Shown here in pieces: positions 37,201 through 39,109 of a DNA stretch of 64,000 bases (within the stretch, counting starts at the first letter, position 1; each line of letters begins with the position of its first letter). Both the position numbers and the translations under genes were made by a program. The stretch is from Dendrobates tinctorius (lineage: Eukaryota): assembly GCF_039654945.1 (NCBI RefSeq), contig NW_027361974.1, positions 1,240,001 to 1,304,000 on the forward strand, written 5' to 3'. Below the pieces are notes generated by a model. That model was not told the origin of the DNA, did not search any database, and saw only the letters and a program-made list of their open reading frames with translations.

Positions 37201-39109
37201 CCGCACTACTACTCTCATCATCCAGAGGAATAAGTGTCTGCTGCAACGAGCCATAGCCGGCAGTGCCCAGTGCGCCACCTGGTGGTCACAGCAGGGAACT
37301 TCACAGAAGGAAATCGTGTTTCCGGTTTTTCATGCTGTTGTCTGCGTGACAAATGTGTCTGTACTGTACAACGTCATCATTTAAGGAAATGCTGTAAATT
37401 CCTTTGCTGTATTCTTTGAGGCTGCGTTTTATGGATCTGTAAAGAATAAATGCGCATTTTCCATGTCCCCAGGAATTGCAGATGGCCCCCGACATGTTTT
37501 ACTGTATGCGGTTACTGGAGGAGACCGGGATCTGTGTGGTTCCTGGTAGCGGATTCGGACAGCGAGAGGGGACGTATCACTTTAGGTGAAGTTTCAGTTT
37601 TTACTTTTATTATTGCCTTTAAAGAGCCAAGTCCAGGAGAAATGGCTGATAACAGAGAACAGCAGCCTGAAGTCTCCTGGGCTCCAGTCAATGTCTCCTC
37701 AGCTGGCTGATAGCAGGGAACAATAGAGCATGGTGCAGGCGTGTTCCTCCATAAGGGTGTCTCCTTGCAGGTGCGTTCCCCCATAACGGCATCTCCTTGC
37801 AGGTGCGTTCCCCCATAACGGCATCTCCTTGCAGGCGCGTTCCCCCATAACGGCATCTCCTTGCAGGCGCGTTCCCCCATAACGGCGTCTCCTTGCAGGC
37901 GCGTTCCCCCATAACGGCATCTCCTTGCAGGCGCGTTCCCCCATAACGGCATCTCCTTGCAGGCGCGTTCCCCCATAACGGCATCTCCTTGCAGGCATGT
38001 TCCCCCATAACGACATCTCCTTGCAGGCGCGTTCCTCCATAACGGCATCTCCTTGCAGGCATGTTCCCCCATAACGGCATCTCCTTGCAGGCGCGTTCCC
38101 CCATAACGGCATCTCCTTGCAGGCGCGTTCCTCCATAACGGCATCTCCTTGCAGGCATGTTCCCCCATAACGGCATCTCCTTGCAGGCGCGTTCCCCCAT
38201 AACGGCATCTCCTTGCAGGCGCGTTCCCCCATAACGGCATCTCCTTGCAGGCGCGTTCCTCCATAACGGCATCTTGCAGGCGCGTTCCTCCATAACGGCA
38301 TCTCCTTGCAGGCGCGTTCCCCCATAACGGCGTCTCCTTGCAGGCGCGTTCCTCCATAAGGGCGTCTCCTTGCAGGCGCGTTCCCCCATAACGGCATCTC
38401 CTTGCAGGCGTGTTCCCCCATAACGACATCTTGCAGGCGCGTTCCCCCATAACGGCATCTCCTTGCAGGCGCGTTCCTCCATAACGGCGTCTCCTTGCAG
38501 GCGCGTTCCCCCATAACGGCATCTCCTTGCAGGCGCGTTCCCCCATAACGGCATCTCCTTGCAGGCGCATTCCCCCATAACGGCATCTCCTTGCAGGCGC
38601 GTTCCTCCATAACGGCGTCTCCTTGCAGGCGCATTCCTCCATAACGGCGTCTCCTTGCAGGCGCGTTCCTCCATAACGGCATCTCCTTGCAGGCGCGTTC
38701 CTCCATAACGGCGTCTCCTTGCAGGCGCGTTCCCCCATAACGGCATCTCCTTGCAGGCGCGTTCCCCCATAACGGCATCTCCTTGCAGGCGCATTCCCCC
38801 ATAACGGCATCTCCTTGCAGGCGCGTTCCTCCATAACGGCGTCTCCTTGCAGGCGCATTCCTCCATAACGGCGTCTCCTTGCAGGCGCGTTCCTCCATAA
38901 GGGCGTCTCCTTGCAGGTGCGTTCCCCCATAACGGCGTCTCCTTGCAGGCGCGTTCCCCCATAACGGCATCTCCTTGCAGGCGCGTTCCCCCATAACGGC
39001 GTCTCCTTTCTCTTACAGGATGACTATTCTTCCGCCGATGGAGAAGCTGCGGCTCTTACTGCAGAGCGTGAAGGATTTTCACGTTCGTTTCCTGGAAGAT
39101 TTCTCCTAA
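28270..39109 (+). CDS. GPT2: Alanine aminotransferase 2 (PLP-dependent, mitochondrial), 507 aa, 11 coding exons
   Basis: Exons 28270-28464, 33290-33379, 33464-33572, 34590-34723, 34911-35154, 35223-35302, 35504-35640, 36761-36935, 37012-37167, 37473-37585, 39019-39109 (1524 nt), all GT-AG. Motifs [44 protein letters not shown] (PLP Lys) and HFRMTILP. Arg-rich N-terminal presequence. Position between C16orf87 and DNAJA2 favours GPT2 over GPT. Confidence 0.95.
28591..30320. repeat. 30-bp C-rich minisatellite in GPT2 intron 1 (CTGCCCCCTGCGGACCCCCGACAGCTGCCA)n
   Basis: About 45 near-perfect copies up to 29940, then degenerate copies. Confidence 0.97.
30581..30932. mobile_element. Palindromic TTAA-associated MITE (T2/Kolobok-type ends AGGGA...CCCCT)
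   Basis: Left TTAA at 30577-30580. Arms are complementary over most of the length (e.g. CTCCAAGATC/GATCTTGGAG, CTTAGGTATCCATG/CATGGATACCTAAG). Confidence 0.75.
30940..31680 (-). pseudogene. Truncated, decayed Tc1 transposase fragment (a second family)
   Basis: ORF track 31167-31574 gives [10 protein letters not shown]...[16 protein letters not shown]...QQSNDPKH...[14 protein letters not shown]. The catalytic D is replaced by S, there is a stop codon, and no termini are found. Confidence 0.9.
31914..32383. mobile_element. TTAA-flanked MITE with long inverted arms (T2/Kolobok-type)
   Basis: TTAA-AGGGG at the left and CCCT-TTAA at the right. Inverted arm CAGCCGTTCTTGAGCTATTAACACTTTTCTTTTG pairs with CAAAAGAAAAGTGTTAATATCTCAAGAACGGCTG. 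Confidence 0.72.
33655..34460. repeat. G-rich minisatellite of about 18-22 bp (GGGAGGGGATGGCGCAC..) in GPT2 intron 3
   Basis: About 40 variant copies with dense GGG runs on the sense strand. Confidence 0.93.
35800..36270. repeat. 53-bp minisatellite in GPT2 intron 7, with degenerate flanks (about 35670-36660)
   Basis: About 9 copies of CTGGGACCCCAGACCGGACCCCTGAACAAAGACGCACGGACTACAGAGCAAACA. Confidence 0.95.
37730..39006. repeat. 32-bp minisatellite filling the last GPT2 intron (CTCCTTGCAGGCGCGTTCCCCCATAACGGCAT)n
   Basis: About 40 copies. The last copy merges into the true polypyrimidine tract. Confidence 0.97.

Follow-up and report, generated by a model that had tools for sequence, protein, structure and literature searches.

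How is a 3′ splice site chosen when the end of an intron is preceded by dozens of modules that resemble it? The question is raised by the last intron of GPT2, the gene for alanine aminotransferase 2 (ALT2), in the frog Dendrobates tinctorius, which lies on a 64,000-nucleotide stretch of contig NW_027361974.1 (positions 1,240,001 to 1,304,000, forward strand; hereafter the window, in whose own coordinates all features are given). The intron is occupied by a minisatellite at 37734-39008 (+ strand), the only array that Tandem Repeats Finder (TRF) reported there, with a period of 32, 40.0 copies, 93% matches and a score of 2172. An earlier note on this DNA had described the intron as an array of acceptor-like modules, and the description was borne out: 39 repeat units, called decoys here, each end in a potential acceptor, and the real acceptor follows them. 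We favor, with moderate confidence, the following account: the minisatellite is young and arose locally, its pseudo-acceptors are products of the duplication junctions, splicing goes to the real site with the decoys silent or minor, and the array is tolerated as a by-product.

The 28-nt core of the unit has 36 matches at three or fewer mismatches, every one of them inside 37775-38980, where 100 dinucleotide-preserving shuffles lead to an expectation of 0. Cutting after each CAG that has G as its next letter (written CAG/G, the slash marking the potential intron-exon boundary) delimits 39 full decoy units at 37739-38980 (+ strand), each with a TTGCAG/G end, their AGs ending at 37770, 37802 and so on to 38980. 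Thirty-seven units are 32 bp long, and the other two, at 38251 and 38408, are without TCC and measure 29 bp. The most frequent form, GCGCGTTCCCCCATAACGGCATCTCCTTGCAG, is also the array consensus and occurs 14 times; in total, 15 different decoy sequences are present, with an internal order and a degenerate first unit. Every decoy contains a branch-like motif, a 7-nt pyrimidine run and GCAG/G. The branch-like motif is CATAAC in 36 of the 39 and CATAAG in three (37739, 38344 and 38885), and a bare CAG/G, its CAG at 37736-37738 (+ strand), precedes the array in addition to the full decoys. The earlier description, of about 40 decoys each reading CATAAC, needs correction in these small points. A head-to-tail unit of 10-100 bp, many copies and internal variants, the marks of a minisatellite or of a variable-number tandem repeat (VNTR), are all present. 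The array has a GC content of 61% and a CpG observed/expected ratio of 1.03, higher than in the gene (0.64) or the window (0.55); at 1,275 bp it qualifies formally as a CpG island.

The real acceptor ends a longer final unit at 38981-39018 (+ strand; 38 bp, end sequence TTTCTCTTACAG), an intron end that is conserved in seven frogs. Its first 28 nt are common with the decoys, and the array stops 10 nt short of the real AG. Within this unit, the branch-like CATAAC occupies 38992-38997, with the branch-like A at 38996; the pyrimidine tract of 13 nt covers 39002-39014, and the AG follows at 39017-39018. The intron's last 10 nt (39009-39018, TCTCTTACAG) are outside the repeat. Two contrasts drawn previously between the real acceptor and its decoys are therefore confirmed, namely the longer pyrimidine tract of the last unit (13 versus 7 pyrimidines) and the longer spacing between the branch-like A and the G of the AG (22 nt versus 16 nt). 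At its other end, the intron begins with a unique 5′ part (37586-37733, + strand), which is colinear with the introns of relatives and holds remnants of an older module, GGCTGATAACAGAGAACAATAG.

The origin of the array was addressed by comparison with the GPT2 loci of Phyllobates terribilis, Ranitomeya variabilis, R. imitator, Anomaloglossus baeobatrachus, Bufo bufo and Leptodactylus fuscus, in which the last intron was located using two exon peptides. This intron measures 2,559 nt in P. terribilis, 449 nt in R. variabilis, 451 nt in R. imitator, 2,050 nt in Anomaloglossus, 3,459 nt in Bufo and 480 nt in Leptodactylus, and 1,433 nt in D. tinctorius. None of the six other frogs has the 32-bp array in it. 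The earlier note had proposed comparing species that lack the array, and in all six relatives the intron end is single copy, as in R. imitator, where it reads ...TGCGCAGGCGCGTCCCCGGATAACGGCGTCTCCTTTCTTTTCCAG/G. When the seven species are aligned, 12 of the 15 final intron positions (TCCTTTCTNTTNCAG) are invariant, and so is the A of a TAAC/TGAC motif; this A would be the real branch point, which its invariance fits. Collapsing the array leaves a D. tinctorius intron that is colinear with those of its relatives. Since the relatives lack the array and have a single-copy intron end, the array arose on the D. tinctorius lineage after the split from Ranitomeya; by this comparison it appears young, and it is specific to D. 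tinctorius among the frogs compared.

The same comparison locates the breakpoints. R. imitator already holds a single-copy CAG/GCGCGT..GGATAACGGCGTCTCCTTTCTTTTCCAG, and the 32 nt repeated in D. tinctorius run from GCAG/GCGCG... through ...TCTCCTT, thereby including the branch-like motif and, of the pyrimidine tract, the first half. Neither the true AG nor the final 10 nt, TCTCTTACAG, was copied. The decoy AG is instead a copy of an upstream CAG that originally stood 5′ of the branch point; its single-copy source is the CAG at 37736-37738, homologous to the CAG/GCGCGT of R. imitator. It resembles an acceptor because the duplication junction sets the CATAAC...TCTCCTT of the previous copy before it. 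The earlier proposal that the splice signal itself had been amplified thus stands for the branch-like motif and half of the tract, and fails for the true AG and the last 10 nt, the decoy acceptors being made by the junction, as the alignment with the single-copy relatives reveals. A search with the 28-nt core found no copy of the unit outside the array in the window. A dispersed repeat family was considered as the source of the unit and rejected, there being no other copy in the window and a nearby 43-bp array being unrelated; the single-copy orthologues argue for a local origin.

From these breakpoints, a mechanism can be proposed. Slippage or unequal exchange would have duplicated in tandem the 32 nt immediately preceding the intron's last 10 nt, the copied piece beginning at the old upstream CAG and ending in the middle of the pyrimidine tract. 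In the transcript, each copy junction puts the branch-like CAUAAC and the half tract UCUCCUU before GCAG, giving 39 pseudo-3′ splice sites. The real acceptor is still intact downstream: it has its full 13-nt tract and a branch-to-AG distance of a typical 22 nt and directly adjoins the exon, and it would stay the dominant or sole site used. The array would be tolerated in a genome and a gene that form minisatellites very readily.

The consequences of using a decoy can be read from the flanking exons. The penultimate coding exon (exon N-1, 37473-37585, + strand) encodes ELQMAP...GTYHF plus the AG of a split Arg codon and ends at a phase-2 donor, TAG/GTGAAG; it matches residues 434-468 of the human ALT2 structure 3ihj in the PDB (E = 7e-20). 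The last intron is accordingly in phase 2. The terminal coding exon (39019-39109, + strand) consists of a G, 29 residues and a TAA stop at 39107-39109, and its translation is the C-terminus of annotated ALT2. A search for orthologues, using as query the stop-free open reading frame (ORF) at 28171-30393 with the search words restricted to exon-1 residues, matched the public 'alanine aminotransferase 2 [Dendrobates tinctorius]' (P0001, 507 aa) at 100% identity, along with other frog orthologues. The C-terminus of P0001 equals the terminal-exon peptide exactly, exon N-1 is identical to P0001, and a public locus (L005) is base-identical to the window across the whole 10,840-bp gene.

When the AG of exon N-1 is joined in turn to the 40 CAG/G sites (the 39 decoys and the CAG at 37738), all 40 give an early in-frame stop, as the earlier note had claimed for every decoy: the products end in RRVPP-stop (30 sites), RRIPP-stop (4), RCVPP-stop (3) or RHVPP-stop (3). 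The stop is the TAA within the branch-like CATAAC, and R-(R, C or H)-(V or I)-P-P would replace the last 29 residues of ALT2. The expected decoy junction, from 37585 to 37771 + 32n, reads ...CACTTTAG/GCGCGTTCC. A stop codon in the last exon escapes, in principle, junction-dependent nonsense-mediated decay (NMD). Given that the array is in the last intron, a decoy product would not be hidden by this pathway, and the earlier suggestion to that effect is supported in principle by established knowledge. Downstream, a motif scan placed the first candidate poly(A) signal, ATTAAA, at 39602-39607 (+ strand) and the next, AATAAA, at 41262, past the 43-bp array.

No such product is on record. D. tinctorius ALT2 is represented by a single protein, P0001, with the canonical C-terminus. 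Two further protein searches drew on P0001 residues 441-507, in one case cut out as a 67-aa piece and in the other marked as a region within the full-length protein. No protein or fragment with ..HFRRVPP was found among the public proteins covered by these and the ORF search (37-117, 279-887 and 408-1297 aa), a weak blank, as no D. tinctorius RNA-contig protein of GPT2 turned up either. Some fragments among the hits resemble exon N-1 at 97% and may come from a mammal, perhaps human. Sequencing runs from D. tinctorius contain 46-66% of the sampled words of the stretch; the exons and downstream sequence already make up ~51% of its distinct 31-mers, and these shares are therefore uninformative on the array in RNA. 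In a different frog, Eleutherodactylus coqui, an 'alanine aminotransferase 2-like' protein (P0006) diverges from those of all other frogs right past ...GTYHFR, at the last exon junction, and continues into an unrelated short tail, which suggests either that another acceptor is used at this intron in E. coqui or that the annotation there is wrong.

The strength of the decoys relative to the real site was gauged by simple pyrimidine counts at positions -20 to -5 and by the longest pyrimidine run. The real last-exon acceptor of GPT2 has 14 of 16 pyrimidines and a run of 13, and the decoys have 9-10 of 16 and a run of 7. For comparison, the acceptors of GPT2 exons E6, E8 and E9 have 9, 10 and 10 of 16, with runs of 3, 7 and 5. 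Decoys are thus weaker than the real site yet inside the working range of GPT2 acceptors. Typical branch-to-AG distances are 19-37 nt (PMC10078293), and the 16 nt of the decoys fall outside this range, whereas the 22 nt of the real site fall within it. We infer from these features that the decoys are silent or nearly so, and that the tract, the distance and the contact with the exon would be the reasons for which the real site wins.

Several observations weigh against that view. In pyrimidine content, the decoys equal or exceed three acceptors that are in use in the same gene (E6, E8 and E9). RNA structure does not hide them either, as no masking fold was found: the last three decoys and the real acceptor fold like shuffles (z = 0.25). 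An intron ending at the first decoy would measure a comfortable 185 nt, and, since the decoys and the real site share their downstream poly(A) partner, exon definition provides no obvious exclusion of decoys. Genes of D. tinctorius were annotated by BRAKER2 with RNA-seq evidence (PMC11152451), and with one model per gene a minor isoform would go unlisted.

The variation among units bears on whether the array is maintained for a purpose. Nearly all of it consists of CpG transitions, at unit positions 2-5 and 21, and the parts that are invariant across the variants, CATAA and TTGCAG, contain no CpG; the uniformity of the latter hence needs no selection. A block of four units recurs 224 bp apart. 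Block recurrence and CpG variants together look like ordinary minisatellite turnover and neutral CpG decay, and the high CpG content that the array still has fits a young age.

Minisatellites are also a general feature of this gene and its surroundings, the window being very rich in them. Repeats with a period of at least 10 make up 43% of GPT2 in D. tinctorius, 41% in P. terribilis, 38% in R. imitator, 26% in Anomaloglossus and 17% in R. variabilis, and two GPT2 arrays are common to several dendrobatoids, which makes those two old. Intron 1 of GPT2 (window 28591-30176) contains a large minisatellite in each dendrobatoid, with a species-specific unit (D. tinctorius, 30 bp; P. terribilis, 50 bp; R. 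imitator, 20 bp; R. variabilis, 35 bp; Anomaloglossus, 51 bp); judging by their units, these arrays were born repeatedly and independently at one place. The last intron of hyloid frogs also carries an older repeat module with GGCTGATAACAGAGAACAATAG (L006:10662-12661; L004:12563-13514; window 37640-37730), present as 85 bp x 23.5 in Bufo bufo, as low-copy repeats of 114-240 bp in Anomaloglossus and as remnants in D. tinctorius. Downstream of the GPT2 stop, between the poly(A) candidates at 39602 and 41262, lies a 43-bp x 33 minisatellite (TCCCCCCGGATGCAGTGTAACGGGGGCATTTCCTGACTTCTGA, window 39773-41199), which may sit within a long GPT2 3′ untranslated region (UTR) and which, on the sense strand, shows an acceptor-like motif roughly once per unit. 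By the simple rule used for such motifs (YAG, at least 10 of 16 pyrimidines and a run of at least 6), acceptor-like sites occur outside arrays at ~3 per kb per strand.

How far the decoys are used can be weighed against this background. Should they be spliced at an appreciable level, some mRNAs would end ...HFR-RVPP-stop, with the rest of the array and the real last exon as 3′ UTR, in the manner of an unselected side effect; this is the chief rival account, which we regard as unlikely, though far from negligible. It would be helped by a pyrimidine content within the range of acceptors used in GPT2, by the absence of a masking structure, by the 39 chances that the decoys offer, each transcribed ahead of the real site, and by the 36 CATAAC motifs that copy a position whose A is invariant in seven frogs. 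The product would be spared junction-dependent NMD by its last-exon stop. There is also a donor-side precedent in human 6-16/IFI6 and CBS, where two pseudo-sites are used besides the authentic donor (PMC1557585). Working against such use are the short 7-nt tract and the 16-nt branch-to-AG distance, together with the blank of the protein searches, weak as it is. Its effect might be to lower the output of full-length ALT2, perhaps scaling with copy number. A stronger form of the idea makes the array a copy-number-tunable, NMD-insensitive splicing sink, in which each added unit would send slightly more of the GPT2 pre-mRNA towards an ALT2 that is truncated and probably inactive (...HFR-RVPP-stop). 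If this were true, repeat length would set the dosage of mitochondrial alanine aminotransferase in D. tinctorius and would differ between individuals; we consider it quite improbable. That the sink has been selected, as a regulator tuned by copy number to set the level of functional mitochondrial ALT2, is very unlikely indeed. An AG, a tract and an in-frame stop are kept in every decoy, and truncation would remove a C-terminal segment largely conserved among the aligned frog ALT2 proteins. The array is, however, missing from six other frogs, including Phyllobates and two Ranitomeya, and is thus not conserved; its invariant positions lack CpG and call for no selection; acceptor-like motifs are not rare in repeat units, as the 43-bp array and the background frequency illustrate; and the protein searches brought up nothing that shows decoy use. 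A regulatory role is accordingly unsupported, and with it the VNTR-length-dependent control of ALT2 raised by the earlier note, against which stand the absence from relatives, the 17-43% of GPT2 that is minisatellite, the neutral-looking CpG decay and the canonical isoform as the only one recorded.

Two further explanations concern the route of splicing and the sequence itself. In three units, at 37768-37776, 37800-37808 and 38914-38922 (+ strand; AG positions 37770, 37802 and 38916), a CpG transition from GCG to GTG has produced CAG/GTGCGT, a decoy acceptor followed directly by a donor-like motif. Splicing to one of these would rebuild a donor, TTTAG/GTGCGT, which has a +5 G and a +6 T and can be compared with the native TAG/GTGAAG; a subsequent step to the real acceptor would then yield normal mRNA without a trace. 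UBC is one example of a tandem repeat in which splicing makes use of dual-specific AGGT sites (PMC10809524). The motif is nevertheless present in 3 of the 39 units only, arising by CpG transition, and the intron, at 1,433 nt, is far below the lengths that established knowledge assigns to recursion introns; we give such recursive splicing very little credence. That the copy number or the entire array is an assembly artefact is hardly credible. The sequence comes from one assembly, and the base-identical L005 provides no independent check on copy number. Against an artefact, the 15 decoy sequences follow an ordered pattern within the array and its first unit is degenerate, the flanking sequence is colinear with that of relatives, and several D. 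tinctorius runs contain the share of the stretch's words given above. The favored reading therefore remains that of a young minisatellite with junction-made pseudo-acceptors behind which the real site is used.

The array can be placed among known splice-site minisatellites. The human F7 intron 7 37-bp minisatellite and those of IFI6 (6-16), CBS, LMNB2 and PDGF(A) form arrays of 5′ pseudo-sites; the authentic donor is the only one used in F7, LMNB2 and PDGF, while in 6-16/IFI6 and CBS it is accompanied by two pseudo-donors (PMC1557585). Like these, the GPT2 array adjoins an authentic splice site with a row of near-identical pseudo-sites, the real site being in register with the units, and such arrays are natural models of splice-site choice. 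A consensus-like pseudo-site is present in every unit, all 39 having YAG/G, a 7-nt pyrimidine run and 9-10 of 16 pyrimidines. The F7-type arrays, in contrast, multiply 5′ splice sites and include the real exon-intron junction in their first unit, whereas the GPT2 array multiplies 3′ modules and leaves the real AG and the last 10 nt outside the repeat. It is thus an acceptor-side variant of the known splice-site minisatellite that lacks the junction within the unit. NAGNAG tandem acceptors were also considered and ruled out, as the AGs lie 32 nt apart and each has its own branch-like motif and tract.

Other systems share single aspects with it. The 25-bp VNTR of ABCA7 intron 18, whose length correlates with aberrant, frame-breaking isoforms in human tissue (PMC5954066), is likewise intronic, begins at a splice site and contains splice-site motifs, and it is the model for a length-dependent effect; it lies on the donor side and its length effect has been shown, whereas the GPT2 array is on the acceptor side and a length effect of it would be hypothetical. 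In the polyubiquitin gene UBC, tandem dual-specific AGGT splice sites are used stochastically (PMC10809524). Here too a tandem repeat presents a splice motif once per unit, and three GPT2 units have CAG/GT; the UBC sites are in coding repeats, whereas those of GPT2 are intronic and have GT in 3 of 39 units only. Which acceptor is picked among several identical ones was also the question put to globin 3′ splice sites duplicated in tandem by experiment (cited in PMC1557585); those constructs are artificial and hold two copies, whereas the GPT2 array is natural, has 40 copies and ends in a stronger one. A limited literature search found no natural minisatellite of acceptor modules.

Some features of the surroundings complete the description. 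Two stop-free ORFs (437 and 503 aa) traverse the array on the minus strand (37515-39023) and were rejected as repeat artefacts: their Pfam matches are to unrelated families and almost none is individually significant, and matches inflated in this way by the repeat give no sign of a gene on the minus strand. A borealin-like gene starts just downstream of GPT2 (window 41900-42300, plus strand), and exons resembling DnaJ subfamily A lie at 49000-53400 on the minus strand. The loci of the relatives have the same neighbours, a UPF0547 gene upstream and borealin downstream. A run of N occupies 20598-20747. At the far end, a 28-bp array (GTCATCCACAGATCCCCCATAACAGCGC) at 63338-64000 reaches the end of the window and shares TCCCCCATAAC(A/G)GC with the GPT2 32-mer (13 of 14 nt), a likeness whose score was reached by 1 of 500 shuffles and which chance or a common ancestral sequence could explain.

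The value of the array lies chiefly in what it offers to the study of acceptor choice. The 5′ pseudo-site arrays of F7 and other genes served to work out how donors are chosen, and natural arrays on the acceptor side are much less documented. In D. tinctorius, 39 near-identical modules of branch motif, tract and AG stand before one stronger real site, the single-copy relatives reveal exactly which segment was duplicated, and the position in the last intron would keep junction-dependent NMD from concealing a decoy product; together these make a clean test system. The locus further indicates that a duplication junction alone can create acceptor-like sites. For the biology of the frog itself, the array is probably neutral.

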